Origin: Rebecca billardiae RCC1528
Taxonomy: Eukaryota > Protista > Haptophyta
DNA: 64,000 nucleotides
Reading direction: 5' to 3'
NCBI GenBank assembly: GCA_965240325.2
Contig: OZ251234.1
Coordinates: 806,001-870,000, forward strand
Numbering within the stretch: position 1 is the stretch's first letter; each line of letters starts with the position of its first letter. Shown here one piece after another: positions 20,764-42,066 of the stretch. The position numbers were made by a program, and so were the translations under genes. Below the pieces are notes generated by a model. It searched no databases. It saw only the letters and a list, made by a program, of their open reading frames with translations, and had not been told where the DNA came from.

Positions 20764-23103
20764 GCTGGACTGAGGTCGCTTGCCCGGCCGGTGGCCCGCA
20801 CGAACCGTCACAATCCAGCGCACCTGCAAAAATGCGCTGAAAAATGAGACGTCGACGCCGCCCCTGAAGCGTCACCAACTCGCGAAAGCCGGCGAGCTCA
20901 AAGCGGGGGGCTGCGCACCCACACGGGCGAGCCCTCGTCCTCGACCCGACCATCGGTGTGGACGACCGCGCGGAGCGCGCGCCGCGCGCGCGGAGCGCGC
21001 GCGGCCGCGGGCGCCTCCCGCGCGGGCGGCGTACGCACGCCCGCGCGCCCGCCCGCGCGCGCGTCCGCGTTTGCGGGCGCGCGCGGATCAGCCATCAGGC
21101 TTCCGTGTCGGGGCGTTGCGTCCGACATGCGCCATGTCGTGCCATGTCGTGGCGTGCGCATGTGCGTACTCTCGGTGGGGTGGTGCGCGGGCGGCGGCGC
21201 TCTCCTGATTTCTACCCCGCGCCCGTGTCGCTGTGCGTGCGCGCTGCGTCGCGCAGGCACGCAAGTGCGCGGGAGCCATCCGCGTGCTCGCGACGACGGC
21301 CGGCCGACGGCCAGCTGTGGAGTAGACGGCCGTCGACTCGAGGGCGCCACCGCGCCGGGTGAGTGAGCACGCACGGGCTCCGCCTCGGTCGGAGGCTGGC
21401 TGGCCGCCGCCGTGGCTTCGAGGCCGACGCGGCGGACGAGGAGGCGGCGGGCGAGCACGGTGGCGCGGTGGAGCAGGCGCGCACGCGCGGCGGCAGGCGC
21501 GACCCGCCGCTCGCCTCGTTCCATCCCGAGCTCCGCTCGGTCTCGCCTCTCGGTGCGCGGCTGCGCAGGCGCCGTGAGCGCAGGCTGGGGGTGGGGCCAG
21601 CAGTGGTGCGCGCTCTCGCTCTGCCGGCACGAGGCGCGTCGGCTGAGCGACCAGCGGCCCGTCGTCGAGCGCATGGCGCAACGCGAGCACCTCAATCAAG
21701 GCAGGTGCGCCCGCACGCCCGCACGCGCCGGCCCGCGCCGCGCGGCGCCTCTCGGAGTTCTCGCTCGCCCTGCGCGCGCGCGCCGCCCCCGGCCGGGCCG
21801 CTTCTTCGCGCGGCCCGCGGCGACAGTCCTCATCGGCCCGCCATGTTGACCAGACTGAGACAGCAGCCGACGGAGCCGGAGGGTGCACCGCGGGCCCCTA
21901 CTAACTACGTTGGTTCTACGGAAGGACCGCGGAACGCGGTCATATTGCTATCTGGCGAGAAGATGGTAGGAGGTGTCGTCGACAGCATGGGCTGCGGCTG
22001 CGGTAGTAGTGGACTGGTGGCGGCCTCACGCGGGCGGGCATACGACGAACTGCAACGGAGCCGGTGACACTCGCTCGGAGCACGAGCACGGAAGCCGCCG
22101 AACGCGGCAAGCTCGGCGGTGGCGTTGGCTGCTAGTCCAGCCTCGACGGCGGAGGACTCTCATGTGAGGACGGTGGCATGCTCGGTGGCGAGCGATGCTG
22201 TGTGCCTCGGCACACAGCCCGCCACAAACACTGCCTCTCGCAGGCAGCCCGGTTGCGGCCCTGGTTGCCTGTGTCCGCGTCGGCTCGGCGCCTATTCAGA
22301 TACCCAACAAATGTACCCGCCACGACATATCGGAAGGAACTTGAATGTATATTGAACCACATCCACGGTCAATTTAATGTGGGTAACAGTGTCCCTATAT
22401 ATATACGGGTAAATTCTTATATAAAAAATGGGTAATCTGCTCGATCTGGCTGTAGTCAGTAGTTTGTTGGAGGACAGTATCGGCGCACAGCATAGAGCCC
22501 CACTCTTGCTTCATAAAATCGTTCGGTTGGTTGACGACGTTTGTCAATAGGTCTTTCCGATCGCATGTCGTCATCTAGCCACCATAACAATTATTAAGTG
22601 TCAAAAGCCCAAGGCAGCCATTGGCGCCATTCCCCAGCTCGAGGTTTCAATCTCAAGGCGCTGAGCAATTCTAAGCGCCACCATGCTGAGGCTTCATTCC
22701 AAATTCAAAACCTTATCATCGACCTCAACTGTCGGTTTTATTCACGTCCAGTGCACCAATTCATTCATCATCATTCATCGTGCATTTCATAATGGCCAAC
22801 AAGCGTCGCGGAACAATCCAGGAATCAAAGCTCCTGAGATGTTCTCAAGCCTTCGCAGGGCAATGCACTATCAGATCATTCCGAGAACGTGCCTTCGCAA
22901 TCAGAAGCCGAGAAGCATCTCCAAACTTTCTAATCACGAAAGTTCTGGGATGAGTCCTTCGTGAGAACCCTACAAAAGTTTTTCTCAGCGATCTGGAGCT
23001 ACACCAGCCACACAACAAAACCGAACTGATCAGCAAGCAGGGCCAGACCCCTGCGCCACCATCGCCAAAGAGCGAACCTCCGCCAGCGCACGAAGTGCCA
23101 ATC

Positions 23104-26100
23104 ATGAGCTCATGGGAGCTTCGCGGCGGACAACGTGGGAACACACCGCGCGGACGCGCGCGGTTTCACCCGAACTCGAAGGTCGACATCCGCGAGGATT
23201 TGACCGACGACACCACCAGACCGGCGGCGCAGCAGCCAAAGCGCGCGTCACGCGACCGACCGGAACGCAACCACTCTCGACCTTCGCAGCAGCCGCGAGG
23301 CGAGAGGACGCGTACTTCGAACGAGCAGCTGCGCTCGTTCAAGAACCTCGACTACCGCTTCGGACATCCCCCGCGGAGCGAGCAAGACCACAACCTCAGC
23401 GGCCGCGACGGCAAAGCCCAGCGACAACGCGTACTACAGGTCAAGCGCAGCAAGTGGCGCTTCAAGGTCAACAAGGACTCCAACCACGCACCCGACGACG
23501 GGGCGTGGAGAGCGGAGCGCACAGAGCCACCCAGCGCCGCGTCTGCGCTGCGGGACCCGCTCCAGCCGCGGGGTCACAACCACCAAACCTCGCAACGCGA
23601 GGCCAAACGCGGCGCGCGCACGCGCACCGCGCACGCGCAAAGTATCCCCACGCTGATTCCCAGCGCGCGTCAGACACAGGGACGACAGTCGGCGACCGAC
23701 TCGATCCCATATGTCCCCTCCTTCACGTTCCAGATTCTCCCTTCCGTCTATGCGAGCGGCTGGGACTCTACGCCCGCCTACAAGGGCGCGGCGACAACGC
23801 CTAACCAGTGGAGTGAGATTGATGACGATGATCCAGCGTCGTGCCAGCCGTGCGACAATCAGTCGTGCACATCGAGGCATTGCCTTCTTGAGTGCAACAT
23901 CTGTGGGATGGGCAGAGTCTGCAGCTACAGATGCGCAGACGCCATCCAGGTTCAGCATCAGCTCGAATGTGAGCAGATCATCCAGTTTGCAGCGATGAAC
24001 GATGGGATTGACATCGATGATGATGGCATTCACGTCCACCAACAGGACGGACCCGTCGCAGCGGCTGATCGCCGCAGCCTGAGCGTCGTGAATGACGCAG
24101 GCGCCAGCCTCGATGATATTTGCCCTTGGCGGCCATCTAAACGATGCACTATCTACTCGGGAGGCTTCATCGCAGCAGCCGCAGAGCGGCATCAAGGTCA
24201 CAACTACACAGTTGGAGACTATGTGCGGGAAAGGGACGAGCTTCACCAAAGCAAGTTTGATCTCATGTTCCATTGTAACGACGCACTCCTACAGCCAGGT
24301 GTCGCATGCTTACTGCACGACGAGTTCTATGGGCTGACTTCTGAAGCAGGCGAGGGACACTCGCCAGCTGACGACGGTCCACCTGGACATGGCACAAACT
24401 ACCCGCCTGCCGCGACTGGCGCCGACAACAGCGCACAGCAGAGCAGCGATGGGGACGAGTCCTCTACGTCGGACATTGACAGCTATGCCACAGCAGAGGA
24501 CCACATTGAGACAAGCTCGCCCCACGCGTCACCGCGAACGCGCAGAAATGGAAGCGAAGCTTGCACCTACTTGCCCGACGCACATGCAATGATGGCTGTG
24601 CAGACAAGCCAGCCCGGCGTCGGAAGCTACAAGCTGAATTTCTTCACAATCAAATCGAAAATGGCTATCCACGGAGCGATCAAGGACGCAGTCACCGAGG
24701 TCAAGGCTTCCTACAAGGGAAGAGCGACCGACACTACGTCGTCCATGGTCACCCTCGTCGAGGCCAGGCTCTCCGGATACGCGCTGGCCGAGGCAGCCGT
24801 GTGGACAGCCGAAAATGCTATTCGGGAACCTTACGCAACCGCATTCGCAAACATGGACGCGGACACCACCATCATGCAGATGACGATCGTCTACGAGCGA
24901 TCGGTGGAAGTACTTTTCAAGCGTATCAAGGACATGATGCTGCCAAGTCTCTTTTCGTACCTCGAGTCGAAAAGGCACATCGTGAACCCGAATGAGAATT
25001 TCCTGAATTTACATACTCTGCTCGAAATCTTCGAGCACGAGCTGAACGTATCGACCATGTCGGAGCTCCGGGCTGAGTTCAAGAAGCTCTACCCGGACCG
25101 ACCGACCCCGGTGAGCGGCCCTGAGATGATCAAGCAAACGGTGGAGATGGTACGCGCATCACGCTATCGAGAGCTAGACGACGCCACACTCCTCGTGTTC
25201 AAGCTGTACAATGGGATGCACGAGCACCCAGGGGTCTACTCGACCGTCATCTCTATTTACGGTTCAATGTCGCCCCAGCAATGCGTGGCGCAGACCGAAC
25301 AGCTCACCGCCCAGATCGAGGACGCATACAGGCGTTGGACTCAGTCGCCCAAGGGACGACAGGCAACGCAACGTGACCCCAAGCGGGGCGGTCCCGCGCA
25401 CGCTCTCAATACTGAGGAGGCGGACCGCCGACAACCAGCAGTCACGTGCTCGCATTGCGGACTACGCAATCACACCGCAGAACGGTGCTGGAAGCTACAT
25501 CCAGACTTGCGGCCACCCAGGCCGCCCGGTGCACCAAAACAGGGCAACTTCAAGCCGCCCGCCGAGCCCGGCAGGTATGACGGCAAGTTCATCAAGGTAC
25601 CTCCGCCCCCCAAGTGGGCGGGGAGGCCGCGAGCCCAGATGGTGCAAGACGAGGACATCGACCCGGAACCCGATGACGCAGATCTCGAGCCGACGCAATA
25701 CGCGTATCTGGACTCGGGCGCGTCCCAATCATTTGTCGATATCAACCTCGGCCTGCTACACAATGCTCATCCGATCAGCATGTCTGTCAAGGTCGCCAAG
25801 CGCGACATTGAGCTACACGCATCCAAGGCAGGCGACATGTACGTATACTTACTCGACGCCGACTCAGACACAACCGTGCCGGTGTGCCTGGAAAACGTCG
25901 TCGGAGTCGAAGATCTCGATACTACTCTCTTTTCAGTCAACGCGTTCGCCGCGGCCGGAATGGCTGTGGTGTTCGACGAACGACCATACATCCGCATCGG
26001 CCCCAAGAGGGTTCATTTGCGCCCCGACAACACTGTCGGATTCAAGGCAGTCGTACCCAAGGCAGAGACAGCCATGCCGGCCACCGCGGACGACATGCCA

Positions 26101-29100
26101 CCAGACGTCGACCCGATCAAGAACGGTCGAAAGATCACGCTCTGGCAATCCAGACTAGGATACGCCGATATCAAGCGTGTACGCGCAACCTACCGCGCGA
26201 ACGACAAGATGTCGGAGGCATCGCCCTGCACGTACCAGCCCTCCGACATTGCCAAGTTCAAAGCTAAGCCGTTCCCGGGCACACGTGAGAGGACAACTCG
26301 ACCGCTCGAGATGCTCCACAACGATGTCATCGGGCCCATCAACGGGCTGCCCGCCAAGACTCCAAGGTGGGGAACTCTATTCATCGATGATTTTTCCGGA
26401 TACATGCGCTTCTACGACATGCAAAACAAGGCTGAAGCGCCGGAGAAGCTCGACCTCATGGCCAGCGAGATGGGAGCCAACTCTCTATCCGCCACCATGC
26501 AGAACAAGGGTATCGCAGGATGCACCATTCACCTTGACGGAGGCCGAGAGTTACACTCAAAGAATTGGAACCGAGTCCTTCGCAGGTACGACATGCTATG
26601 CAACTACATGTCGCCCCCCCACACGCAGCAGCTGAACGGCGTCGCCGAACGTGGCCTCGGAGTCATCATGAATGACGCCAGGACAATGCTGTACCTCTCA
26701 GGCGTACACCACAAATGGTGGCATTGGGCAGCCAAGTGCGCTGCCGCGCAACGCAACCTGATGAGCAAGCATCCTACCAGCGATGGCAAGCTGGTTTCGC
26801 CGCACGAGTTGATGTTTGGCACCTCGCCCGGGCCCTTCCTGCAAAAGCTGAGAGTCTGGGGCTCGCCTTGCATCTACCTCGTACAGTCGATCAACAAGCA
26901 GAACAAGCTACTCCCGCGCGCGCGGGAGGGCATCTTATTGGGATACGGATTTGACGGTATCTTCGAGCGAGGCGCGATCAAGCGATCGCACGGATACATC
27001 GTTTTGAGTGCCGACGACGGGAAAATCGTCATCACTCGGCATTTCAAGTTCAACGAGCAAGTCATTTTGGATCGAATCTCTACGCATTTCAAGGAGATCC
27101 GCGAAATTCGGGACCCCCTGCTGGCGTGGAGCGCTCGGCGACCCCCTCAAGGTGCAGATGCTGGTAAGACCCATGACAGCAACACCAACGAGGAGGGCGG
27201 CGAAGAGTTTGCCAGCAGCAGCAGCGACGCCGACAGCGGCTCCGAGCGCGGAGGAGACGATCCACCATCGCCGGACGAGAAATCAGACGACGATGACGAC
27301 GAGGATGACGGGGACGGCCCCGACGACGACGAGAAGGGAGATGACGGCGACGACGACGGTGATGAAGACGGCCCCGGAGCTGGAGGCGGACCATCGCCCA
27401 GCAACGCGCCGCCGCAGCCGAAGCAGCCTCCTCCCTCCGCCGATCGCCGCCCACAGCGGACCCGCAACATGACTGGCAAGTCATACTTCCCGTCGACGCG
27501 GCGCGCGCGCGCGCGCGCGCAGCTCGCGCAGCTCGCATCAGATATCCCGGTACCTACATCGTTCAAGGAAGCGATGGAGAGCAAGCAAGCATCCGATTGG
27601 ACAAGGGCTATCATGGAAGAATACGAGGCCCACGACAGACTGGGCACATTCACGCCCGTCGTTGTTCCCAAAGGGAAAGCAATTATCCCATCGAAGCTGG
27701 TCTTCAAGGTCAAAGCCAATCCAGATGGTACCATCGAACGGTACAAGGCAAGATTGGTTGGTCAAGGCTTCCGCCAGATTCAAGGAGTCAATTACGACGA
27801 GGTGTTCTCGCCTACTATCCGGTACGAGAACGTACGCCTCCTATTGGCACTGACGACGGAGCTACGAACACCAGAAAGACCTTGGATCATCCACTCCGCG
27901 GACGTGAGTACGGCGTACCTCCAAGCCCCTTTGGAGGACGGCCTGAAGATCTACACTACGCTACCCCCGCTGTACCCGTGTACTCTCAAGCCACCCGAGG
28001 GGCATGTGGTCGCGGCCGACTGGGATATGGCCCTTCCAGGATTTAAGCAGAGCGGCCGACGATGGCACCTCCGCCTCAGCCAGAAACTGCGAGAGAAAGG
28101 ATTCAAAAAACTCGCACAGTCGGAGTGCATCTTCGTCCGCATCTCCGGAGACATCATCGACGTCATCGCAGTGTACGTGGACGATCTGCTTATTCTGAGC
28201 AGCTCCCCCGACAGCGCAAGGCCCAGCTCGATTATTGAGGAAATTCGAAAAGAATTTACCCTCCGGGATTTGGGACCAGCAACGACGTTCCTGGGCATGA
28301 ATATCACCCAGGGGCCCAAGTCGACGACTATCTCCATGTCACAGTACATCACCGATCTCCTCAAGAGGCACGACATGAGCGACATTACGCCCGTCGACAA
28401 CCCATGCAGATCGGCAGCAGAGCAACCGACATCAATCGAGACAGACGATTCATCATCGTGCTCGTCGGAGGAATCAAAGACCTACCGAGCAATCGTCGGA
28501 GCGCTACTATTCATCATGAACACCTGCCGACCCGACATCAGCTATGCAGTCAACATGTTGGCAAGGTACATGGCAAGCCCAAGTTCGAACGACCTTAAAG
28601 GTGCCAAGCGAGTGCTCAGGTACTTGGCCGGGACAAAGAATTCCGGCATCACTTTCAAATCAACACCTACTCAGCCACGGACGGAGATGTTTGTGGACTC
28701 GGATTGGGCCAACGATACAAAGGATCGCCGCTCGACAGGAAGCTATATCTACTTCCACGCAGGCGGCCCAGTATCGTGGCGCACCTTCAAGCAGTCAATC
28801 ACAACCCTCTCATCATGTGAGGCCGAATATGTCGCTCTCGCTGAAGGAGCCAAAGAGGCAGTTTACCTACGCGACATCATCAGCGATATTCTCAATATCC
28901 CCAAGACGCCCATTGTGATCCATGAGGACAACAACTAACAAGGGGGCGATTGATCTCTCGAAGAACAGCATCCATCATAAGCGCACCAAGCACATCGACG
29001 TACGACACCATTTTATTCGAGATTGTGTCGACCTCGGTGCAGTCAACATCATCAAGGTACACACATCGGAAAACATCGCCGATTGTCTTACCAAGGCGCT

Positions 29101-29158
29101 ACCCAAGGACAAGTTTGCAAAATTCCGAGACATCATGGTTGCACCAGTTTCGAATTGA
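23104..29158 (+). pseudogene. gag-pol: Copia gag-pol polyprotein (MYND-like finger, Gag, zinc knuckle, protease, integrase, RT, RNase H), broken by a 7-bp insertion near 28935
   Basis: CSHCGLRNHTAERC, YLDSGAS, integrase D..D..E (HNDVIGP / HLDGGRE / NGVAER), YKARLV, YVDDLL, DSDWA, EAEY. The RNase H tail KHIDVRHHF lies in another frame (28922-29158). Confidence 0.95.
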
Positions 29159-29256
29159 GGGGGCGTGTCAAAAGCCCAAGGCAGCCATTGGCGCCATTCC
29201 CCAGCTCGAGGTTTCAATCTCAAGGCGCTGAGCAATTCTAAGCGCCACCATGCTGA

Positions 29257-30530
29257 GGCTCCGGCTTCGGTTGACCCCTGCCAGTCCGGTCATAGAAACC
29301 GGGCGTACCGAAAATGAAAACGACCTTCGCGAGGTCGCACGGAGGCGGTCGAAGGCTTGCTGGACTCGGGTTGGCGAGCTGAGCGCGAATCCGCACCGTT
29401 TGCCGCGATCGCTTGTTTTTACACGGCGCCAGAGCCCGATTTTCACCATTTCTACTGGGAGTCCGGGTACTTTTATTGGCCTTTTGCCCACTATGGTGGT
29501 GCGGGCGCGGGTCGCGTTGGACGTGCCCATCGTGTTCGACACCGACGTCTCGGACGAACAGCTGGGAGGTAATCTTGGCGACCGCGATGCCGAGCACCTC
29601 TTTGCGGTCGCGCGTGACCTGGAGATCGTGCACACGGTGTCTGACACGACCTCGTCAGTGCACCACGGTCGGTGCAAGCCTCTCTGCACGTTGCGCCGTC
29701 TCCGGACCTCTGCAATCAGATCAAGGTGAACATGTCGAGGACGCACAACACGATGGAGCGGATGCTTTTCCATCTCGTCGTCGATATGCTCAGGCCTCTC
29801 TGTCTGGACGAGTACTTTGTGATCCTTACGCGCTCGACACTGCAAGTCGCGACGAGGGCGACTCACGAGCCCGAGACAAGCAGCAAGCGGCAGAAGGAGG
29901 CGGACGGGCAGTGGTGGACGATGGGGGGGCGAGTCTGATTTCAAGCGATACGCGCGCATGGATCTTGACCGGCGCTCGCGCGAGCTGGGCACCGGCGAGA
30001 TCGAGAGCGACACGATCGTCCGCGGCGTTGTCGTGCTCACGCCCGTGCAACCGATCACGCCTGACTTTCAGCGGCGCCCCAGCACGCGGCACGAGGCGGA
30101 GGCACGCGGCAGCGGCGGCGGAGCGGCCGCGTCTGGCGGTGTACCAGCTGAGAGAAGAGCGCGGCACAATGCTATGCGCGCGCAGCTGACCAACCAGAGC
30201 GCGCTCGCAAGTGCGGGGCGGTGAGCTGCCGTGAGGCGTGACATGGTCATGGCGTGCGTATCACGTCGATGCATGAATGGAATACAAGTTCCGTCAGAAA
30301 TACCCGCGTCAATATGCATTTACCCATGTTTCGGATTTCGGTCAGATTTCTGTATGTGTCACTTATAGAAATTGAGCCTGAAACATATTGGGAGGTGGGT
30401 GTATGCTCAATGTCGCTTTGAAGTCATCAATCCGGGGTCGGGAGGGACCCGGCTATATGGTCCGCTCGAGTGACTTCGACTCGGTTCTCAGAATGCCCGC
30501 CACTGGCAGGGGTCAACCGAATCCGGAGCC
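29257..30530. mobile_element. 1.27-kb non-autonomous TIR DNA transposon inserted in the 3' LTR of Copia A (possibly PIF/Harbinger-like)
   Basis: 29-bp TIR GGCTCCGG(C/A)TTCGGTTGACCCCTGCCAGT. Duplication of CTGA (or TGA) relative to the empty 5' LTR. Confidence 0.85.
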
Positions 30531-31340
30531 CTGAGGCTTCATTCCAAATTCAAAACCTTATCATCGACCTCAACTGTCGGTTTTATTCACGTCCAGTGCA
30601 CCAATTCATTCATCATCATTCATCGTGCATTTCATAATGGCCAACAAGCGTCGCGGAACAATCCAGGAATCAAAGCTCCTGAGATGTTCTCAAGCCTTCG
30701 CAGGGCAATGCACTATCAGATCATTCCGAGAACGTGCCTTCGCAATCAGAAGCCGAGAAGCATCTCCAAACTTTCTAATCACGAAAGTTCTGGGATGAGT
30801 CCTTCGTGAGAACCCTACAAAAGTTTTTCTCAGCGATCTGGAGCTACACCAGCCACACAACAAAACCGAACTGATCAGCAAGCAGGGCCAGACCCCTGCG
30901 CCACCATCGCCAAAGAGCGAACCTCCGCCAGCGCACGAAGTGCCAATCATTAAGTAACGTTTCGCTGAATCTCTATGTGGCACTACTGTGGCGCAGCGCG
31001 CGCACGCTCGGCCCGCGGCGCGACGGCACGCGGAGTAGGTTTTGAGGTCGAAATAACTTTTGCTCCGCCCCGATGGGGCACATTTATGGCGTCGATTCTG
31101 GGCGAGAGACAAAATATAGGACGTCATTCCGAGTGCGCAGGAATATCGCCCCAGTTGGGAGGGACCCATCACCTATAAATTGGTACACGGGCCCTCCGGG
31201 CCCGCATAACTCAAACTGTCCGGGCGCGCCGGCGCCGGCCGCCGAGCGGGCCGCCATCCAATTCAATGAAGAATTGAAGATTGCGTAGTTAGTGGTCGGG
31301 TGTTTGGTCAATAATTGGTGTCAAAGGAATCGCCAATCTA

Positions 31341-31430
31341 CAGTTTACTAAGAATAAGAGACGCACACAGCTCAGGCAGGCGAGATTGACGCCCGCCAAC
31401 TGTCACCGCCCATGAAGCCGTCGCCGATGG
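31341..31430 (-). mobile_element. 90-bp one-ended insertion in the 5' LTR of element B (family copy 2)
   Basis: Absent from the 3' LTR; shares its fixed end with 3981-4026 and 46011-46056. Confidence 0.8.
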
Positions 31431-31755
31431 CAGTGATTTCCACTTTCCAATCCAACATTTTACTCGCAGTCACACAGTGGCGGCGCGACCGCTGCGGCGG
31501 CGCTCGCACAAAATTCATCCAAAATCAACACTGACCTGATCATAAATCGACAGCAAAACAGCATGGACGGCAACGTACATCCTACGACCTCATCTCGAAG
31601 CTTCTGAGACAGAATCAGACGAACGAGTCACCGTCCGGGAATGTCACCGTCCGGGAATCTTTGACCCGCGAAGACGACGTGTCGATCCGAAATTACTTCG
31701 CTAAAATTAGCCGACAGCTCGATCCACGCTGAAGCTCCATTCGTTCGTCCGCGCA

Positions 31756-34359
31756 ATGTCTGTGGCCGCGCGGTTCTCTCAACATGCTAGCAGGTGCAGG
31801 GACTACTTGGGCAAGGACGGAGATGGCAAGAACAGCGGCAAGGACGTGAACGGCCATCAGCCCGCCCCAGTTGCTCCCCTCATTGGGTTGAAGCCAGGCG
31901 TGGCAGCGCAAAAGCGCTCGGCGATTGCGCAAAGTCGCACGCCCAACTACCTCGCCGCTGCCCTGAGGGGCATGCAGGCTGAGATGAAGCGGCAAGGCGA
32001 GAAGCTCACGCTTCTCTGCAAGCCCATCTCCAGCGCCTACGGGCCTGGCAACACCGCTGACCTGAACTCAGGCAGCCACGTGACGAGTGCGATCGCACCG
32101 CGCGTCACCGACCGGCTTCATGCCGAGTCAATCAAGGATCACCTTGAGGAGGAGGTTTGCGCACAGTGCGGTGAGGAGGAGCGTTGCCGCTCGCATCCCT
32201 CGCCATCGCGCCACTCCATCCGCACGCACGTCGTTGCGCAGGGGATCTCAACAACTACCGCTCGGCACTTTGCGCCCGCAAGCGAGGAGCGCGCGGCCGA
32301 GAGCCCGCAGCTCAAGGAGTGCCTTGCAGCCTCCGAGTCATCGAACGAGGTCACCGAGCGTTCCGGGGCAGATGCAGCGCTCGACGCTGCTGCCGCTGAT
32401 GCCGCCTCGACCGTCGAGGCCCTCGAGCCTGCTGACGCTGCTCGGCGTGCTGGCCATCTGGCAGCCGCCCGTGACAGCGCGGTGGTCGTGACCGCCGCAG
32501 TCAGTCTGCAGCCTCGCGCGCATGACACTGTGTCTGAGTCTGACCGATCGAACGATGACATTAGCACCGATGAGTGCGACTCAAACGACCTGTATGGTCT
32601 GGCAGAGCAAACTATGCTCCAAGATGCTACGACGCGTGACTCAGTCACCGCGAGCACCAGCCCCAATATTCATTGGGACCGAACCAAACCCATCGTATTC
32701 TTGGAGATGACCAACAAATACGTTTACCCCAAAATTCACGAGGCCCTCGCAGGCCCAACGATGGCTTCCGAAGCCGAGCTGCTCGCCACGAGCGACACAA
32801 GCAGCCGCGAGATGACCGCCGCAGAGACGGCAGAGTCCTCGTCTGGCACGTATCGACTCGCGTCGAACATAGGAAGCGCATACGATGCAGGGGGGGCATC
32901 ATACACCTGCTTGACGGCAAAGCCGCAGCAAAACCAAGTTGGCGAGCGCGACGCGCATGCGCATGCATCAGCTGCGTCAGCCATCACAACGCCACACTCT
33001 TGCAAGGAAGAGTATTCCGCCGAAGCTGCCGCGGATGCACATGCATCACCGCAGGACAGAACGAGCGTGAAGAAGCCCAAAGAAGGCACCACCGCCTCGA
33101 CGAGGGTCACTCCTCGCTCGAAGGTAGAGCGCGAATCGCCACAGAGCGCGCGCGACATATCGACCAATGCACTTGAGTCGAAGAAACGTGACTGGATAGT
33201 CATTGAAGGAGGAGTCACAGACTCTAGTCCAAACAAGAAGGAACGTGTGTTCATGGCACGCGAATCCTCGGCAGGAGTGGACACACCCGCCACACACAAG
33301 CTGACACAGTCGGCTCTGAAATCCAAGCGCGCGGTACACAGCGCGATACGGGATGCACTCGCAGAAGTGAGCACCTACTACAAGGGCAAATCCTCAGATG
33401 TCACACCTGACATATTGGAGCCCAAGGATAGCAAGCTATCCGGCTTTCAACTCATTGCCAAAGATAAATGGGTGAAAGACGCAGCCAAAATCGATCCATA
33501 CAAGGCTGATAACGCTGACGCCAATAAGATCGGATCGGTCTACGATCGATCTGCGGCGGCGATATTCAAGCAGCTGAAGGACTCTATTGAGCCTCAGTTA
33601 TTCGCCTATCTGGAATCGAAGCTGCACATCAGCGATCCGACCAAGAACTACTTGGATCTGGCGCTGCTGCTACAGATATTCGAGCGAGAGCTCAAGATCA
33701 CAACTATGTCCGAACTCAGGGATGAATTCCTGAAGTTATACCCGACAAAGGTGTCGCCCGTGGGCGCATCGGACATTATCAAGAAATCCGTCGAGCAAGT
33801 CCGCTCATCTCGATATGGGAATCTGGACGATGCTACGATGTTGGTCTTCAAGCTGTATAACAGCACGCACGACCATCCCCAAGTCTACGAGTCAGTTATC
33901 TCGCACTTCGGAGCGCTCACGCCCGAGCAATGTGTGGATAACACTGACCAGATAATGGCCCAGATGGAAGATGCCTACAAACGGCACGGCTCAATGAAGC
34001 TACTCCATCAGAACAATACCAAGGGGAGAGAGACCGAATACTATTCCAAGATACGCCAAAATGCTGATTATCAGCAAGGCACGCGGCGACGCGGTGACTT
34101 TGAGGGCGCCGAAGTCTTCGCCGCTCAGGCCCAAAAGGCTCAAGCCAATGGCGAGAGCGGGCCGAATAATTCGGACACCGGCAAACGGTGCACTCACTGT
34201 GGTCTCAAGAACCATACTGCCCAGCAGTGTTGGAAGCTCCACCCAGAGCTACGCCCCAAGGCCAACAATTACAACAAAGGCAAAAACAAAGGAGCCAACA
34301 AGTTTCCCAAGGAGCGTATCCATTTCCTGGATATTCCTGCTCCAGATGCCTATGATTAA
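31756..34359 (+). CDS. gag: Gag protein with long N-terminal extension and zinc knuckle
   Basis: C-terminal half aligns by eye to the Gag of element A (LFAYLESK, IFERELKITTMSELR, LDDATMLVFKLYN) and contains CTHCGLKNHTAQQCWKLHP. Confidence 0.88.
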   Translation: MSVAARFSQHASRCRDYLGKDGDGKNSGKDVNGHQPAPVAPLIGLKPGVAAQKRSAIAQSRTPNYLAAALRGMQAEMKRQGEKLTLLCKPISSAYGPGNTADLNSGSHVTSAIAPRVTDRLHAESIKDHLEEEVCAQCGEEERCRSHPSPSRHSIRTHVVAQGISTTTARHFAPASEERAAESPQLKECLAASESSNEVTERSGADAALDAAAADAASTVEALEPADAARRAGHLAAARDSAVVVTAAVSLQPRAHDTVSESDRSNDDISTDECDSNDLYGLAEQTMLQDATTRDSVTASTSPNIHWDRTKPIVFLEMTNKYVYPKIHEALAGPTMASEAELLATSDTSSREMTAAETAESSSGTYRLASNIGSAYDAGGASYTCLTAKPQQNQVGERDAHAHASAASAITTPHSCKEEYSAEAAADAHASPQDRTSVKKPKEGTTASTRVTPRSKVERESPQSARDISTNALESKKRDWIVIEGGVTDSSPNKKERVFMARESSAGVDTPATHKLTQSALKSKRAVHSAIRDALAEVSTYYKGKSSDVTPDILEPKDSKLSGFQLIAKDKWVKDAAKIDPYKADNADANKIGSVYDRSAAAIFKQLKDSIEPQLFAYLESKLHISDPTKNYLDLALLLQIFERELKITTMSELRDEFLKLYPTKVSPVGASDIIKKSVEQVRSSRYGNLDDATMLVFKLYNSTHDHPQVYESVISHFGALTPEQCVDNTDQIMAQMEDAYKRHGSMKLLHQNNTKGRETEYYSKIRQNADYQQGTRRRGDFEGAEVFAAQAQKAQANGESGPNNSDTGKRCTHCGLKNHTAQQCWKLHPELRPKANNYNKGKNKGANKFPKERIHFLDIPAPDAYD

Positions 34360-36145
34360 CTATCAAGGCAGGGCATAGCCCAATAACAAGGTCCAAAATC
34401 CAGGCCAAAGAGTGACAATGCGGTGCATATAATGCCCAGGACTGACTCGGGTTACCTAAAACCGTCACACGGAAGTCCCAGCACTTGACCCGTATCCTGG
34501 CATTTGCAACCGTTGCTGACTGCTTCAATTCACTCATGCACACAGATGCACAAACAATACCAAGCCCAAAACCACTCATAATCCAAGCTTAGTCTTCACA
34601 GACGAGCGCATATTGGATTGAGGGGGGGTGTCAAAGGAATCGCCAATCTACAGTGATTTCCACTTTCCAATCCAACATTTTACTCGCAGTCACACAGTGG
34701 CGGCGCGACCGCTGCGGCGGCGCTCGCACAAAATTCATCCAAAATCAACACTGACCTGATCATAAATCGACAGCAAAACAGCATGGACGGCAACGTACAT
34801 CCTACGACCTCATCTCGAAGCTTCTGAGACAGAATCAGACGAACGAGTCACCGTCCGGGAATGTCACCGTCCGGGAATCTTTGACCCGCGAAGACGACGT
34901 GTCGATCCGAAATTACTTCGCTAAAATTAGCCGACAGCTCGATCCACGCTGAAGCTCCATTCGTTCGTCCGCGCAATGTCTGTGGCCGCGCGGTTCTCTC
35001 AACAAGTGGTCATCATTAAAACCGCGACCAATCGGATGGCCTGCATAGCGCGAAACGCGGCTGGAGCCTGCGCGCCATCAACTCCTTTGATCAGTCAAAC
35101 CGCAAACGTCGTCGCTCCTTAGTCCTTGAATCTCATTGGCCGAAAAAAAGTGCTTGTAACGGGTCGTTACGTTACGCATCCTAAAGGACGTAAGTTTTTT
35201 TGATTTTTTCGGACGGGCGTCACACGGCACTCTTTACTTATGAACTTGTCGTGGGCGCGACCTTTTGTCGCCGAATGGATAACTACCTCTATATGTGGTC
35301 TCAAAAATCGAAACTCGGTCTCCTCCAGCCCTGTAAATCGTCCCCCGACTCCCCCCGTCCCTTTTTTTCTTATTGATCAAATAAGATCTTATTGGGTAAA
35401 CGCGAGCTCCGAGCGTGTCGAGCCCTGCTAAAAGCTCACCGGCGCGTAGCCGGGCGCGTCGACGATGACGCCCACGAGGCAATCTGACCCTCGCTCCTCT
35501 GACGAGCGAAGCTAATCCTCCTGCCGCAACCAACTTTCGGTTGCGCAGGGTGACACGGCGTTTTGCGGCCCGGCTCGGGAATCTTGTAACCTTCCTGAGC
35601 CCCGCTTCCGTGCGTCCGCCAATCGCAGGCGTTACCGACGCACCGCCGTAAGCTCATCTTTCCCCCAGGTACTCGGTAATGTCATCGGACCTGGGTAAGC
35701 TGCGCACGGACCCATGATCCCGGATTCTCGATTCTCAAAACTGAGAATCCGGGCGTCCATGAATGAAGTGATCGAGTCCGTTGTTCCTTGGACTCTTCCA
35801 CGATGGCGCCCGTCTGTGCCGCCGGCGTGCCATCCGTGCCGCGCTGCGCCGGGCCGTACCGCCCGCGCACGCGCCGCGTCCGTGTCGCTCCGCGTCTGCG
35901 CTGCCGCGTCCGCGCTCCGCGTCCACGTCGCTCCGCGCCAGCGCTGCTGCGCTCGCGCTCCTGCCGCCGCGCGCGCCGCGCGCGCGCGCCGCCAGAGCCA
36001 GCCACTGCGTAGCTGATGCCGCCGGCCCGCCTGGTGCGGCGCCGGCCCTGACGTCCCAGCGGCGACGCCATCTGCTGAGATGCGCGCCCCAGGCTGCGTC
36101 AGCTCAACACCCCCCCTCGACAGCCATAGCCGCGAGCTGCGCCGC

Positions 36146-39100
36146 TTACCGCGCGCGCGTCGGGTGTCGGTCCACCATGATGGCGTCGACGTGCCGCTTG
36201 AACGTCGCACCGTCCGTCGCCTTCGTCATGATGTCAGAGTGGTTGAGTGAGGTGTGTACCTTGACCACCTTTACCTTGCCACCCTCCTGCGCGTCACGCA
36301 CATAGTGATGCTTGATCTCGATGTGCTTCGAGCGCTTGTGGTGCACAGGATTCTCCACGAGGTCGATAGCCCCCTTGTTGTCCTCTCGCACCTCCGTCGC
36401 GTCCCGCGGCGGCTGCCGCATGGACTCGAGTATGCTCCGCAAGTAGCTCACCTCGCGGCAGCAATCGCTCAGCGCGACGTACTCCGCCTCCGTCGAGCTC
36501 AGCGAGACTGTACCTTGCAGCCCGCTGTGCCACGACACAGGCGCCCCATTGTAGAACACAATGTATCCACCCGTCGACCTGCCCTTGGTCTCCACCGGAT
36601 TGCTTGCCCAATCGGAGTCAGCGAAAGCAAGTAGGTCGGGGTGCTCGGAATCTGTCGCAAACTTGAACAAGATTCCCAATCGCGGGCATCCACGTAAGTA
36701 GCGCAGCACGCGCTTCGCACTTACCAGATCCACCGCCCGCGGACATGACATGCGTCGCGTCAGCATGTTCACCGCGTGCGCGATGTCCGGCCGCGCCGTG
36801 ACCATCGCAAACATGAGACATCCCACCATCGCCTGGTAGTTCTCAATCTCTGCGCGCTGCAGCAACGCCTCGTCGTCGTCGCTCAGCTGCGCCCGCGCCG
36901 CCGGCTCCGGCGTGCGCGCCGGCGTGCTTGCGTTCAAACCGAACCGCTGAAGCACGCTCTCGACGTACGGCCCCAGATGCATCAGGATGCCGTCGTCATG
37001 AACTTCAAACACGGCGCCCAGGAACTTATCGAGCCGCTCACTCAGCTTGATCTCGTAGTGCTCCTTCAGGTCAGCCGCCAGCTTCTCCACCGCGCGCGCG
37101 TCGCGCGTCAGGTTGAGAAACAGCAAGTCGTCGACAAAGCCGCCCGCGATGATGAACTCGCCCGGCGCCGACTCCTTGACGTAGATGCACGGCGCACTCG
37201 GACACTCCGAGAAGCCGCGCGCGAGCAGCTGGGTGCGGTGCGTGCGATGCCACGCGCGCCCAGACTGGCGTAGGCCCGGATACGCCTTCAGGCTCCGGCC
37301 CACGACTTTGTACCCCGGCGGCGCCTGCGTGCTCGGCACGTAGCCCGGCGGGAATGAGAAGAGAGGCCGCTCATCCGGCTTCAACTCCGAGTTGAGGTAC
37401 GCGTCCTTGACGTCGCCCTTCGACAGTATGCCCAGCGCCACAACCGACGCTGCACCCAAGTCGACTCTCGCGCCCGCCTGCTGAGCGGCGATCGCCACGA
37501 GTAGTCGCACTTGTTCCGGCCGGATCGTCGGAGCAAAGACCTCCTGAAAGTCGATCCCCGGCCGCTGTAGGTTCCCCAGTAGCACCGACCGCGCCTTGAA
37601 GCGCGTCACCTCGCCCTCCGGGTTCGACTTCACGTCAAAGACCCACTGGCTCGGCAACACTCGCGTGCCCTCCTGAACCACCACCTCCTCCGAGGTGCCG
37701 AGCAACTTGTGACCTTCCAAGTGCTCGAGCATGGCGCCCTGCCACTGGGGCGCCTCCGCCGACCGCATCGCCTCGCGATAGTTCGTCGGCACCTTCACGT
37801 TGATCTTCTGGAACACCGACGCGGCGCTGACGACGGCAGTAAGCAGCTGCGGCCGTCGGCGCGACGTCCGATCCCTGCGAAGCGGATCGTGTCCCATATC
37901 CAGGCCGGGCGGCGGCGCGTCCTCGATCACGCCGTCGTCACCGTCTGCGCCGCGCGGCGGCCCGCCAGCATCTGCTGCGGCCCCGCGCCGTGATTCCGTC
38001 GGCGGTATCTGATCCTGCCGACCCGGCTGCGTCATCGACGCGCCTGCCCCGCCACGCCCGCCCTGCGGCGTCGGCGTCGACGGCTGTGCGCTCGCGCTGC
38101 TGCACCCGCGTTGTCCCGCGTCCACGCTGCTGCGCCCGCGCCCCGACGTTGACGCATCTACGTCGTCGTCGTACCCGACGTCGAACTCTGTCGCGTCGTC
38201 ATTCCCGGCGTCGGCTGGCGTCTCGCCGCCGTCGCCGTCCTCGTCCTCACCGTCGGCATCACCGCCGACTGGACGATGTCCGCCGCTTACTGCGGCGCCG
38301 TCACCATCACCCACGTACGCGCCACCGTCAGGTGCGCCCAGCGACGAGTGCCCCCCCTCGACCAGGTCGGTCTCGTCGATGCGTACGTCACGTGAGTGAA
38401 CGAGACGTCCGTCGTCTAAACGACATACGTACCCAAGCACGTAGCGCCATGTACCGCGCCACTGCACGCCGTGCCCACCCCAGAGATAGACACGTCCGGG
38501 TAGTGCGCGCTGCTTCAGCTGCCCCAATGCATTGCGCCGTGCGCCCAGCATCAGCACGCGGCAGCGCGCGCCAAACGCCACGTGATGCTTCCACGTCGGG
38601 CGTTTCCCAAAGAACAGCTCATCCGGCGTGAGCCACTCAATGTCTCCATCGTCACGAATGATACCACGTGACGCCAGTCGATTGCGCGACGCGCATGCGT
38701 GCCACGCCGCGTAGTGCCAATCGACCCTCGAGACTCCACGCGCAACGACCGTGGCGCGCAGCCTCGACTTCAGCGTGCGGATAGCGCGTTCCGCCACGCC
38801 ATTCGAGCTCGGCGAGTCGGGCGCCGACGTGACCGTCGACGAGAACCCAAGCTTAGCCAGCTCACCCTCGACGTACGTACTCAGCAACGTCGAGCCACCG
38901 TCGGTGTGAATATGGCGTCGCGCCATAGTACACCCCGACGCCAGGACCCAATGCGACATGTGCATGGCCCCTGTTCCAAGCAACTGCGCGTACCAGCGGA
39001 ATGCCCGACCAACCTCGGCGTCATCCAAGCTGCGTAGCGCGTACACTTGCCATCGACGTGAATGCCCATCGATGAATATGATCCCATGAGGATACCCTCC

Positions 39101-39460
39101 ACGTGCGCCATCGGCCCCAACTGGTAAGTCGATGCGTGCCATAGAGAAGATGTCGACGTGCGTCACCTGCCCAGGGTAGTGCGCCGTCGGCATCGCGTCC
39201 GCGAACGACCGCCGCGTCATGCCCGCCGCCGACTGCTCGTCGAGCGGCTCACGCCGCGCGTTCGCCCCCTCCATCCCCTCGGCCACGCGTCGCGTGCGCT
39301 CGAGTAGACGTTGGTCATTGGTGCCCGTTCGAACCGACCAAGTGCGTAACCACGCCGGATCAGCGCCTCGCGCCGCCTCCGTAGTAGTAGTGGTATCAGA
39401 TACCGTAGTGGTTGTGTTTGTGGCTCGCACCTGCGCGGGTTCCGGGCTTAGGCGTTTGGG
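36146..39460 (-). CDS. pol: Pol (integrase, RT, RNase H) of Copia C, in the -1 frame relative to gag-pro
   Basis: HVDIF / HTDGG / NGVAER integrase motifs; FKARSV and FVDDLL (RT); ADSDWA, TEAEY, EDNKGA, KHIEIKHHY (RNase H). Confidence 0.95.
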   Translation of the reverse strand, partial: PKRLSPEPAQVRATNTTTTVSDTTTTTEAARGADPAWLRTWSVRTGTNDQRLLERTRRVAEGMEGANARREPLDEQSAAGMTRRSFADAMPTAHYPGQVTHVDIFSMARIDLPVGADGARGGYPHGIIFIDGHSRRWQVYALRSLDDAEVGRAFRWYAQLLGTGAMHMSHWVLASGCTMARRHIHTDGGSTLLSTYVEGELAKLGFSSTVTSAPDSPSSNGVAERAIRTLKSRLRATVVARGVSRVDWHYAAWHACASRNRLASRGIIRDDGDIEWLTPDELFFGKRPTWKHHVAFGARCRVLMLGARRNALGQLKQRALPGRVYLWGGHGVQWRGTWRYVLGYVCRLDDGRLVHSRDVRIDETDLVEGGHSSLGAPDGGAYVGDGDGAAVSGGHRPVGGDADGEDEDGDGGETPADAGNDDATEFDVGYDDDVDASTSGRGRSSVDAGQRGCSSASAQPSTPTPQGGRGGAGASMTQPGRQDQIPPTESRRGAAADAGGPPRGADGDDGVIEDAPPPGLDMGHDPLRRDRTSRRRPQLLTAVVSAASVFQKINVKVPTNYREAMRSAEAPQWQGAMLEHLEGHKLLGTSEEVVVQEGTRVLPSQWVFDVKSNPEGEVTRFKARSVLLGNLQRPGIDFQEVFAPTIRPEQVRLLVAIAAQQAGARVDLGAASVVALGILSKGDVKDAYLNSELKPDERPLFSFPPGYVPSTQAPPGYKVVGRSLKAYPGLRQSGRAWHRTHRTQLLARGFSECPSAPCIYVKESAPGEFIIAGGFVDDLLFLNLTRDARAVEKLAADLKEHYEIKLSERLDKFLGAVFEVHDDGILMHLGPYVESVLQRFGLNASTPARTPEPAARAQLSDDDEALLQRAEIENYQAMVGCLMFAMVTARPDIAHAVNMLTRRMSCPRAVDLVSAKRVLRYLRGCPRLGILFKFATDSEHPDLLAFADSDWASNPVETKGRSTGGYIVFYNGAPVSWHSGLQGTVSLSSTEAEYVALSDCCREVSYLRSILESMRQPPRDATEVREDNKGAIDLVENPVHHKRSKHIEIKHHYVRDAQEGGKVKVVKVHTSLNHSDIMTKATDGATFKRHVDAIMVDRHPTRAR

Positions 39461-42066
39461 GGCGGCGCAGCGCCAACGCGCCCCCGCCCCGCGCCCACGC
39501 GCCGCACTGGCGCCCTGCGCCGTGCGCGTGCCTCCGCCGGCGCATCGCCGACGTCCGGCCCCACCTGGCGCCGTACGATCTCGGCGCGCAGCGTGGAATC
39601 GCGCGGCAGCTGCACGACGCCGCCTCCCAGCGCCGTAAAGTCCGCAGTGTTGCCGCGCTGCGAGTAGTGGAACTCGATGCCTGCGTCCGCGCAGTGCTCG
39701 ACCCACAGCAGCGGCGCCGTGACGCGCCGCGACGCCCACGCCTCGATCTCGAGCGTGAGGACCTTGTCGCTGTCGTCGTCCGCCGCAAGCTTGACCACCA
39801 GGGTCCCGCGGTGAGTGACCCGCTCCCGCGCACCGTTCCCCCACTCGATCTGACATGCGCCGTCCACCGGGGTAAGATTCGTCAAATCCTCGGCCATGGC
39901 GATGTTCTTCCGTGCGCCAGTGTCAAACACCAACGCCCGCGTGTTGTCCTCCGGCGGCGCCACGCGTGCCTCGGCCGCCCGCGCCGCGACGATCTCGATG
40001 TCCTCGTCGCGCTGCGCCCTGCCGCCGATAGCCGCGCCAATAGGCGCCAAGCCGAGTCCGGCGCCGGCGCCGCCGCCGTCTCCGGCGTCAGCGTCACCGT
40101 CGCCACCAACGGCGCCGTCGGGCTCGTCACCCTGCTCGGGTGCGAACGCGACCTGCGTGCGGACCGTGCCGCCGCCGTTGCCATTCCCGACCACGGCGCG
40201 GGTGCTGCCCCCCGCACCGCCGCCGCCACCGCCACCGCCGCTCCGATGTGAGCCACGGCTGCGATCCGACCGCGTCGACGCCGCGTCATCGCCAGCGTTC
40301 GAGTCGCGATCAGCCTGCGTCACCTGCGGGCAGTAACGCTTGATATGCCCCACGGCGCCGCACTTGTAGCAGTGCGGCCCGTGCGCGTCGTCGGAGTCGT
40401 CCTGGCCTCCGCGGCCGGCGCCGCGGCCAGTGCCGCCGCCGCCACCGCCACGACCTCCGCCGCCGCCACCACGGCCAGCCGGCGACGTCGTGTCGCCGCC
40501 GCCGCCACCCGCCGACGCCGCCGCCGCCTGCGCCAGGCGGAGCCCGTCGATTGGGTGCGCGCGGGTAGCGCCGCCGCCTCCTGGCGTGCGGCCACCCGCC
40601 CCTGGGCGCCCAGGGCCGCCGCGGTCAACCCGCTTGCCCTTGGAGAAGTCCCAGTCCTCGAACTTGCCGTTGAGCTCGTGCACGAGCTCCTGCACGTCGA
40701 AGTTCGTCACGGTCCTGTAGTCCTTCGACTCGTACCGAGTCCGCATCTCGATGCCCGCGCCCACCGACGGAATGAACTCGATGAGCCGCGCAAGCATCTC
40801 CGCCGCTGGCGCTGCGTCACTCAGCTCCTGCAGCAGCACGTGGTTGTGCTGTAGCACCTGGAAGAGCTCGAGTGCGCCGACGCCGTCCTTGCCGCAGTCC
40901 GTCAGGACCGTCCGATGCCAGCGTGCCCGCACCGACATGTACTTCCGCATGTCGTCGGGCTTGCGCATGCGCAGGATCGTCTTCCACAGGTACAGAAACT
41001 CGCGCCCCGGCGTAAGTGCGCCCCGGCGCGCGCGCTCCTCCTGCACCTCCGGCTGCGTCTCCATGAGGCGGTTGATGTGCTGCCACGCAGCCTCCGTCAC
41101 CCACGACCGCAGCTCGGTGCGTAAGAAAGCCGTCCCTTTCTCGTACTGCGCCCCGGCGTACTTGGCTGGGTCCGCCTCGTCGCCGTCCGGCGCTGCCTCC
41201 AACACGCTCTGTCGGAGCTTAATGTCCAGCATGGCGTGCTCGCTCGCCTGCCGCTCATGCATCTGATCCTCGGTCTCGCGCTCGCGGCGGTAGAGCTCGC
41301 GCGCGCGCGGATCGAGCGTCACGGCAGCGCCGCCCGCGGGCGCCGCGCCACCGATCCCGCCGGCGCCGCCCGTAGGCGCCGCGCCGACGCCGGCGCCGCC
41401 CGCAGGCGTCGCCCCGTCAGTCCCAGCCGGCGCACCTGCTGCGCCGCCTGTGCCCACACCCGGACCGGGTGTGCCGGCCGCCGGACCCGGAGAAATTCCG
41501 GATCCACCGCCCGCCGCCGGACCTGAACCCGGTCCGGTCGCCGTCGGGCCGCCCGGAGTGGCTAAACCACTCCCTGCGCCCGCCGAGGCAGCCTGCGCGT
41601 AGCTTGGCGCCTGCCTCGCCCCCGCCGCCGCCGCCGCGCGTTCCGCCGCGGCCCGGCGCTCGGCGTGCTCGCGGCGCTCGTGCTCGTGGCGATGGTCAAG
41701 CAGCCGCTGCTGCAGCGCGTAGTTCTCACGCGCCAGGTCCATCCGCTCGGCACTGACCTTGATCATCTTCGCCGCGGATGGGTTAAAGGTCTCCCACGTC
41801 GAGTTGTACTCCTCGAGCGTGTTGATGCGGTGCTCCGCGTTCGGGCCGTGCGTCACGATGATGCCGTTCAGTGCGGACATCGTAGCACCTTGCCCCGCCG
41901 GAAGCGCCGCCAGCTTGCTCGCCGATTGCGCGAGCCAACGCTGCTGAATCCCCTTGTCGTTGAGGCTCCCAACGTCGACCGAGCCGTAGTACCGGCCGCT
42001 CGTGCTCATCGGCGCGATCGATGAGAAAGCGCCGCGCGTACGATCCCTCCCGATCGCTGCATGCAT
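39448..42066 (-). CDS. gag: Gag-protease ORF of Copia C
   Basis: Zinc knuckle CYKCGAVGHIKRYC and aspartic protease motif LVFDTGA. Confidence 0.92.
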   Translation of the reverse strand: MHAAIGRDRTRGAFSSIAPMSTSGRYYGSVDVGSLNDKGIQQRWLAQSASKLAALPAGQGATMSALNGIIVTHGPNAEHRINTLEEYNSTWETFNPSAAKMIKVSAERMDLARENYALQQRLLDHRHEHERREHAERRAAAERAAAAAGARQAPSYAQAASAGAGSGLATPGGPTATGPGSGPAAGGGSGISPGPAAGTPGPGVGTGGAAGAPAGTDGATPAGGAGVGAAPTGGAGGIGGAAPAGGAAVTLDPRARELYRRERETEDQMHERQASEHAMLDIKLRQSVLEAAPDGDEADPAKYAGAQYEKGTAFLRTELRSWVTEAAWQHINRLMETQPEVQEERARRGALTPGREFLYLWKTILRMRKPDDMRKYMSVRARWHRTVLTDCGKDGVGALELFQVLQHNHVLLQELSDAAPAAEMLARLIEFIPSVGAGIEMRTRYESKDYRTVTNFDVQELVHELNGKFEDWDFSKGKRVDRGGPGRPGAGGRTPGGGGATRAHPIDGLRLAQAAAASAGGGGGDTTSPAGRGGGGGGRGGGGGGTGRGAGRGGQDDSDDAHGPHCYKCGAVGHIKRYCPQVTQADRDSNAGDDAASTRSDRSRGSHRSGGGGGGGGAGGSTRAVVGNGNGGGTVRTQVAFAPEQGDEPDGAVGGDGDADAGDGGGAGAGLGLAPIGAAIGGRAQRDEDIEIVAARAAEARVAPPEDNTRALVFDTGARKNIAMAEDLTNLTPVDGACQIEWGNGARERVTHRGTLVVKLAADDDSDKVLTLEIEAWASRRVTAPLLWVEHCADAGIEFHYSQRGNTADFTALGGGVVQLPRDSTLRAEIVRRQVGPDVGDAPAEARARRRAPVRRVGAGRGRVGAAPPPNA

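Follow-up and report, generated by a model that had tools for sequence, protein, structure and literature searches.

A self-complementary octamer at the primer-binding position of a clade of Copia retrotransposons in the haptophyte Rebecca billardiae

How does a Copia retrotransposon begin minus-strand DNA synthesis when no tRNA fits the site next to its 5′ long terminal repeat (LTR)? The question is raised by a 64,000-nt stretch of the genome of Rebecca billardiae RCC1528 (positions 806,001 to 870,000 of contig OZ251234.1, assembly GCA_965240325.2, forward strand), hereafter the window, which carries three different Copia elements, termed A, B and C. Each of them has a palindrome of the form TG-N4-CA at the position of the primer-binding site (PBS). 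The priming of PBS-less Copia elements has been an open question since the report on the fungal GalEa elements in 2017. Comparison within the genome and with external relatives assigns these octamers to a single Copia clade, in which the inner bases change in pairs, and we tentatively propose that the octamer may be a priming site through which two genomic RNAs pair.

A palindromic octamer directly follows the 5′ LTR

The LTR ends were set by comparing the two LTRs of each element together with the target-site duplications (TSDs). In A, B and C the base directly behind the 5′ LTR is the first of the octamer, and no octamer follows the 3′ LTR. A sequence-only reading of the window had placed the three octamers directly behind 5′ LTRs of 506, 376 and 720 bp, and had described the 12-bp palindrome CATGAGCTCATG in element A; the LTR comparison and the TSDs confirmed these positions, the palindrome and the lengths, with the qualification that the 376 bp of element B are those of its 3′ LTR, the 5′ LTR being 90 bp longer. 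Membership of Ty1/Copia is indicated by an RVT_2 domain and an integrase SH3-like domain in the order integrase-reverse transcriptase (RT), by the LTRs, by G-rich polypurine tracts and by 5-bp TSDs. The parts of the three elements, including their open reading frames (ORFs), are as follows.

22594-22598 and 30950-30954: TSD of element A, TTAAG, flanking it on both sides
22599-23104, plus strand: 5′ LTR of element A, 506 bp, TGTCAAAAG...GCCAATCA
23105-23112, plus strand: octamer of element A, TGAGCTCA, adjoining the LTR and lying inside the 12-bp palindrome
23104-28938, plus strand: gag-pol ORF of element A, 1944 aa, starting at the ATG of the LTR junction, RVT_2 at aa 1515-1768
29157-29165, plus strand: polypurine tract of element A, GAGGGGGCG
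29166-30949, plus strand: 3′ LTR of element A, in two pieces (29166-29260 and 30531-30949)
31319-31784, plus strand: 5′ LTR of element B, 376 bp enlarged by a 90-bp insertion (31341-31430)
31785-31792, plus strand: octamer of element B, TGCTAGCA
31756-34359, plus strand: ORF of element B, 867 aa, without RT or integrase
34629-35004, plus strand: 3′ LTR of element B, 376 bp
35385-35389 and 42786-42790: TSD of element C, AGATC
35390-36109, minus strand: 3′ LTR of element C, 720 bp, same sequence as the 5′ LTR
36110-36118, minus strand: segment directly beside the 3′ LTR of element C
36146-39856, minus strand: pol ORF of element C, 1236 aa, RVT_2
39448-42066, minus strand: gag ORF of element C, 872 aa, with a zinc knuckle, starting at the junction ATG
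42058-42065, minus strand: octamer of element C, TGCATGCA
42066-42785, minus strand: 5′ LTR of element C, 720 bp, TGTTGAGC...CCCAATA, ends TG...TA

The flanks of element B, ATTGG and AGTGG, match at four of five positions. Residues 424-864 of its ORF are 41-43% identical to the matching part of the polyproteins of A and of F52, another family of this genome, and presumably represent gag-protease.

Two of the LTRs are interrupted. In element A, an insertion of 1270 bp (29261-30530) separates the two pieces of the 3′ LTR. Copies of the 8-bp sequence CTGAGGCT in direct orientation border it, none of its ORFs matches Pfam, and it may be a DNA transposon. In element B, the 90 bp inserted into the 5′ LTR are bordered by the repeat CAGT, and apart from them the two LTRs are identical.

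Six lineages of the genome carry the palindrome

A six-frame search of the 72-Mb assembly with the RT of element A returned 121 matches to Copia RTs, which belong to several families. The plastid contig of the assembly encodes psaF, which marks the host as an alga with a red-type plastid. Twenty loci were taken for LTR pairs and TSDs, and the junction counts below come from whole-genome searches with short patterns. The sequences that follow the 5′ LTR, with element B as listed above, are these.

A and its relative A2 (96%): TGAGCTCA
F52 (RT 52% identical to A): TGTCGACA
F37: TGAGCTCA
C: TGCATGCA
F39: TGGTATCGGCG..., iMet-like
F32: TGGCGGAGCC...

Six lineages (A, A2, F52, F37, B and C) thus have a TG-N4-CA palindrome at the PBS position. 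The octamer is placed outside the LTR by an LTR pair with a 5-bp TSD in A, A2, F37 and C, by the four-of-five flank match in B, and by the LTR pair only in F52. Genome-wide, all 38 C-family junctions (38/38) and 22 of the 23 A/A2 junctions have their family's octamer. A variant contig of about 97% identity from the public sequencing runs retains the octamer of element C. At least 40 B-like copies read CA followed by TGCTAGCA, with the next 15 nt differing from those of B. As the ORF of B has no RT or integrase and resembles, over residues 424-864, the polyproteins of F52 and A, the B lineage with its B-like copies is classed from sequence as internally deleted and non-autonomous. Its octamer is private, being common to none of the autonomous families found. 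The sites of F39 and F32 are of the TGG type and resemble complements of tRNA 3′ ends; the cognate tRNA gene was found for neither.

Several observations concern the families themselves. The LTR termini of family C are TG...TA instead of TG...CA, despite the 38 identical junctions and the identical LTRs, and an integrase accepting the TA end seems to have been active recently in this family. A subfamily of F32, seen in L019 (G000:C18, ~393.68 kb) and at six further sites, has a post-LTR stretch of about 30 nt that resembles a copied tRNA 3′ end: it holds the T-loop motif GTTCGA, and its reverse complement ends in CCA. To judge from these features, the extension may result from read-through into the primer tRNA during plus-strand synthesis; its two exact matches on C24 (406191 and 420824) may be the tRNA genes. 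Insertions of the palindrome families (L002-L016 flanks and the A/A2 3′ junctions) lie very often in AT-rich or (TA)n DNA of this GC-rich genome, with TSDs that include TATAT, ATATG, TAATA and TTAAG, which suggests a target preference. At G000:C26:966443-969559, three B-like internal segments in succession, spaced 1109 bp apart, suggest that a short B-like derivative has been repeated in tandem.

The palindrome families form one old clade

In an RT-RNase H tree of the genome's own elements, the palindrome families and the TGG families lie on opposite sides of a split with 100/97 support. An exhaustive phmmer search added 150 further Copia proteins, and in the resulting tree of 268 sequences the palindrome families belong to a 16-member clade. 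In a more careful tree with 30 randomly chosen outsiders and F39 and F32, all of which fell outside, this clade received 100/99 support. A, B and C, described in the sequence-only reading as three different Copia elements, are therefore members of one clade and not three independent inventions. Since RT identity within the clade falls to 33-37%, the clade is old, and it is apparently algal or protist. It is also recently active, as the 38 identical C junctions and the two identical 720-bp LTRs of element C indicate; the LTR identity had been read correctly from the sequence alone. Searches for gag homologues beyond this genome found none.

The external members are contigs from public metagenomes and sequencing runs, three of which reach the LTR end. 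Their LTR ends were inferred from landmarks (the G-rich polypurine tract, the LTR start TGT, and an A before the octamer), not from two LTR copies.

L053: ...GGTTGTCA followed by TGAGCTCA; contig stops 3 nt past the octamer
L055: ...CACAACA followed by TGCGCGCA; LTR collapsed by assembly
L056: ...CCGAACA followed by TGAGCTCA; LTR collapsed by assembly

A metagenome scan with an RT profile of the clade yielded 80 loci, all generic Copia with 29-34% identity, which were used as controls. An LTR-type repeat pair is present in 28 of the 80, and about 20 have a readable post-LTR sequence. The TG-N4-CA palindrome occurs in 9/9 clade members with a resolved junction (a count outside which L057/L058 and L052 fall), in 0/2 TGG families and in none of the ~20 readable control junctions. 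The excess of palindromes among related families, which the sequence-only reading had named as a test of its proposal, is thus present.

The octamer covaries as a unit of 8 nt

Five variants of the inner four bases occur in the clade: AGCT, TCGA, CATG, CTAG and CGCG. Self-complementarity, length and position are kept in all of them, as had been claimed for A, B and C, and the observation now extends to one clade with external relatives. Under a symmetric scheme of four pairs, 32/32 pair cells in eight lineages are Watson-Crick, and seven cells are changed on both sides, so the compensatory covariation that had been suggested as a check is borne out. The outer TG and CA are invariant, and the inner two pairs vary as AU/CG/UA and GC/AU/CG/UA. 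None of 500 column shuffles (0/500) matched the observed pairing or covariation score, and registers slid along the alignment were 21-47% paired. The chance of a palindrome, given TG, is 1/256 per lineage; a chance origin of the palindromes is excluded.

The boundaries of the octamer are sharp. The 12-bp symmetry is specific to A, and in the other lineages symmetry ends at 8 bp. Position -1 is A throughout; of about ten cases, two (A and L056) have a pair between -1 and +9. Between close relatives (A and A2, B and the B-like copies, and the two copies of F37) the octamer is kept, and differences set in at +9. Because the symmetry ends there and relatives diverge from +9, the functional unit appears from the sequence to be exactly 8 nt.

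Each element contains the octamer a single time, and no LTR has its 6-nt core. Over the 400 nt downstream, A, A2, F52, B and C have no second copy of octamer or core; F37 has one copy of the core, at +111. Folding calculations gave a mean unpaired probability of 0.34-0.66 for the octamer, with no conserved local fold and no conserved hairpin loop presenting it. The calculated energy of the octamer duplex is -10.7 to -14.1 kcal/mol.

No tRNA-type primer-binding site is present in the clade

The control loci display the usual Copia sites. About a dozen of the readable ones have sites for the 3′ end of tRNA-iMet (TGGTATCAGAGC and near variants), and six have the half-tRNA site GGTTATG(G/A)GCCC. 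In the palindrome clade the third base of the octamer is A, T or C and never G, so the CCA end of a tRNA cannot pair with it, and conservation covers only 8 nt, which sets the octamers apart from tRNA 3′-end (Pseudovirus-type) sites. The half-tRNA (Hemivirus-type) motif is absent from all clade members. The earlier statement that A, B and C have no tRNA-type PBS holds on both counts.

Among 46 tRNAs, 7 of them nuclear genes, matches anchored at the site reach at most 6 nt. The expectation that no host tRNA would match over 10 nt or more therefore stands for the tRNAs read, with nuclear coverage limited to those 7 genes. TGTCGACA occurs once inside a tRNA-Phe on contig C40, which is taken as mitochondrial; this internal 8-mer does not extend and is taken as a chance match. 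A PBS that would begin after the octamer, with the integrase trimming 8 nt, was ruled out, as nothing is conserved from +9. Fold-back priming of the Tf1/TAR type is likewise not supported: in the comparison of each site with its own LTR, which answers to another check named earlier, no LTR held the octamer, its 6-nt core or an anchored complement of 7 nt or more.

The junction ATG starts gag

The last A of the LTR and the TG that follows it form an ATG, which is the first in-frame ATG of gag(-pol) in every intact Copia family of the genome, the TGG families included. It is in frame in 7/7, with a chance of about 1 in 2000, and was seen in loci L002-L020, in elements A and C, and in L055 and L056, where it is the called gag start. 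The earlier observation that, in A and C, gag is read in frame from this ATG stands; the feature is not special to palindromic elements, as F39 and F32 share it. Because the junction ATG is the gag(-pol) start, the whole 5′ untranslated region would, judging from the sequence, consist of R-U5, and the priming site would be coding in these Copia families. The octamer spans the TG of the ATG and codons 2-3, and the encoded residues are MSS, MST, MHA, MLA and MRA.

A proposed model of priming in trans by paired genomic RNAs

The 3′ end of a minus-strand primer is expected to pair at the first base after U5, because this pairing defines the LTR end. As the site is its own complement, any primer pairing there would end in the same octamer. 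The obvious source of such a primer would be a second copy of the element's own RNA, and the private octamer of the B-like family fits a self-supplied primer better than a shared cellular one. We propose, as a tentative reading that we rate close to an even call, that the octamer may serve to prime minus-strand synthesis in a separate Copia clade that has given up tRNA and in which two genomic RNAs pair. The pairing would be in trans, because no LTR holds the complement of the site. Priming of this kind, with a cleaved 3′ end extended on the partner as the sequence-only reading had suggested, would still be the simplest mechanism to explain selection for self-complementarity.

In the model, two genomic RNAs would pair through the octamer into an 8-bp duplex, and one of them would be cut directly 3′ of ...CA, in the manner of the RNase H cutting of an RNA duplex in Tf1. 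The new 3′-OH, ending in CA like a tRNA, would then be extended over U5-R of the partner RNA. The invariant TG and CA may be the terminal pair retained from an ancestral tRNA-CCA:TGG primer-template. In retroviruses the primer serves as template for the PBS of the plus strand. On this basis, a base substitution in a primer supplied by the element itself would be passed on to the progeny in mirrored form, which would open a route to compensatory pairs. If true, such mirrored mutation would explain the perfect compensatory evolution of the octamer, and possibly that of the GalEa site as well. It is conceivable, though doubtful, that the genomic RNA dimer itself is the primer-template complex, which would be a third way of priming in LTR retroelements beside tRNA and Tf1-type cis fold-back.

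Several points weigh against this proposal. A duplex of 8 bp is short against the 10-18 nt of known PBS pairings. The cut RNA would lose its 5′ end, so that only one RNA per pair could serve as a full template. In the clade member L057/L058, TG-N4-CA is lacking, and other palindromes, among them CGAATTCG, lie about 45 nt upstream of gag. The nuclear tRNA set was sampled in part, through the 7 genes given above. Finally, snap-back copies (U5-octamer-inverted U5) are absent from the genome for C and A, which is weak evidence either way.

The alternative that survives best, although we consider it unlikely, is that the octamer mainly acts as a dimer-initiation or packaging signal overlapping the priming site, the primer being some other host or element RNA. 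Genomic RNAs of retroviruses and Ty1 dimerise through palindromes (PMC6844567), the covariation would suit any RNA-RNA homodimer, and the 8-bp duplex has the strength of a retroviral dimer-initiation site (DIS). The LTR end, however, is set by primer pairing at the first base of the octamer, so even here a primer would have to end in that same octamer; moreover, no other conserved block follows as a candidate PBS, and the calculated folds do not put the octamer in a conserved hairpin loop.

A GalEa-like hairpin, in which a downstream complement folds onto the octamer in cis and is then cut as the primer, is quite improbable. It has a precedent in the GalEa elements, where a palindrome at the LTR end is accompanied by the complementary CHSeq2 12-41 bp downstream (PMC5445492), and in element A the 3′ half of the octamer can pair with GAGCT a few bases downstream. 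A2, F52, F37, B and C lack this small hairpin, however, and the octamer is unique in each element, the F37 core at +111 being the only further copy of octamer or core within 400 nt downstream. A hairpin also demands two complementary sites, not a palindrome.

We regard as very improbable that the palindrome acts as DNA, as the site of a dimeric protein, or reflects a constraint on the first codons of gag. DNA palindromes of 8 bp are typical sites of dimeric proteins, and the octamer does contain the TG of the junction ATG with codons 2-3. The inner four bases, however, are free as long as the symmetry holds, unlike those of sequence-specific protein sites; the encoded residues differ, and the TGG families share the junction ATG without a palindrome. 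Least probable of all is the pairing of each octamer with a host tRNA, tRNA fragment or other small RNA, for although tRNA and half-tRNA priming are the rule in Copia (PMC6317226, and the control loci here) and AGCTCA is found in the D-arm of several tRNAs in addition to the tRNA-Phe match on C40, the five octamers would need five RNAs, each palindromic over the same 8 nt, CCA ends are excluded by the third base, no octamer resembles the half-tRNA motif, the tRNAs read match over at most 6 nt save that internal 8-mer, and the sequence after the octamer is not conserved.

For the open question of priming, this genome offers a cleaner case, with an 8-nt signal, no second motif and five natural compensatory variants, and with tRNA-primed Copia families as internal controls in the same cell. 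Some families also have dozens of identical, very recent copies, and an abundant non-autonomous family has its own octamer. Together these features make the identity of the primer directly testable. LTR annotation tools that require a PBS matching a tRNA will reject or misclassify the whole clade.

Other features of the window

Beside element C, a host ORF on the minus strand (42898-44607) encodes a polysaccharide pyruvyl transferase domain. A satellite-like tandem repeat of 214 bp forms two arrays, 7168-8968 and 10027-12251, with copies 80-97% alike. A pair of direct repeats, 14625-15249 and 19636-20776, is about 95% identical and has inverted ends of its own (CAAGGGCGGTAAGGG ... CCCTTACCGCCCTTG); it is a mobile element of another kind than the Copia families. 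The segment 51522-55604 is a tandem duplication with a period of ~2.09-2.15 kb and copies 99-100% identical.

Comparison with known priming and dimerisation systems

The closest parallel is GalEa, a fungal Copia group in which a palindromic "Conserved Hairpin Site" replaces the tRNA PBS (Donnart et al. 2017, PMC5445492); its authors discussed DIS-like and Tf1-like roles for the site, and the mechanism was not established. GalEa and the present clade are both Copia without a tRNA PBS, with a short palindrome abutting the 5′ LTR end that varies at mirrored positions, and both have LTRs of the form TGT...CA and a 5-bp TSD. They differ in the palindrome itself, which in GalEa comprises 10 nt including the last A of the LTR (A plus CTGATCAGT or A plus CTAATTAGT), whereas here it comprises the 8 nt of TG-N4-CA and starts after the LTR, the -1/+9 pair being confined to A and L056. 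In addition, the GalEa palindrome forms a hairpin with CHSeq2, and the present clade has no downstream partner. The RT-RNase H motifs also differ: KARLV, FVDD and CRPDI here, compared to KSRLVI, QTDD and CQPEA in fungal GalEa, which was compared by its quoted motifs only (PMC5445492).

The proposed priming without a tRNA would be shared with the Tf1/sushi elements of Ty3, which self-prime with a primer that RNase H cuts from their own RNA where it forms a duplex (PMC6317226). The sequence-only reading had named self-priming as known from Tf1-type Ty3 elements; it is also predicted for the plant Copia lineage TAR (PMC6317226), so it is not confined to Ty3. In both groups the PBS finds its complement in cis, in the first bases of the transcript, which lie inside the LTR; in the present clade the LTR has no complement of the site.

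The retroviral DIS and the PAL sequence of Ty1 resemble the octamer as short self-complementary RNA segments near the PBS that pair two genomic RNAs; they sit beside a normal tRNA PBS, the retroviral ones in a hairpin loop (PMC6844567). In contrast, the octamer lies exactly at the PBS position, and the elements showed no separate PBS.

Copia elements primed by tRNA-iMet or half-tRNA share position and architecture with the clade and, in the 3′-end type, the first two bases TG. Their sites (TGGTATC... and GGTTATG(G/A)GCCC) are at least 10 nt long and not palindromic, unlike the octamers of the clade. In the genome of R. billardiae the apparently tRNA-primed families F39 and F32 coexist with the palindrome clade. 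Full-text searches of the literature found no palindromic or self-complementary PBS beyond GalEa. Altogether, the elements described here constitute a second Copia clade with a palindromic substitute for the PBS, simpler than that of GalEa and with much stronger comparative evidence.

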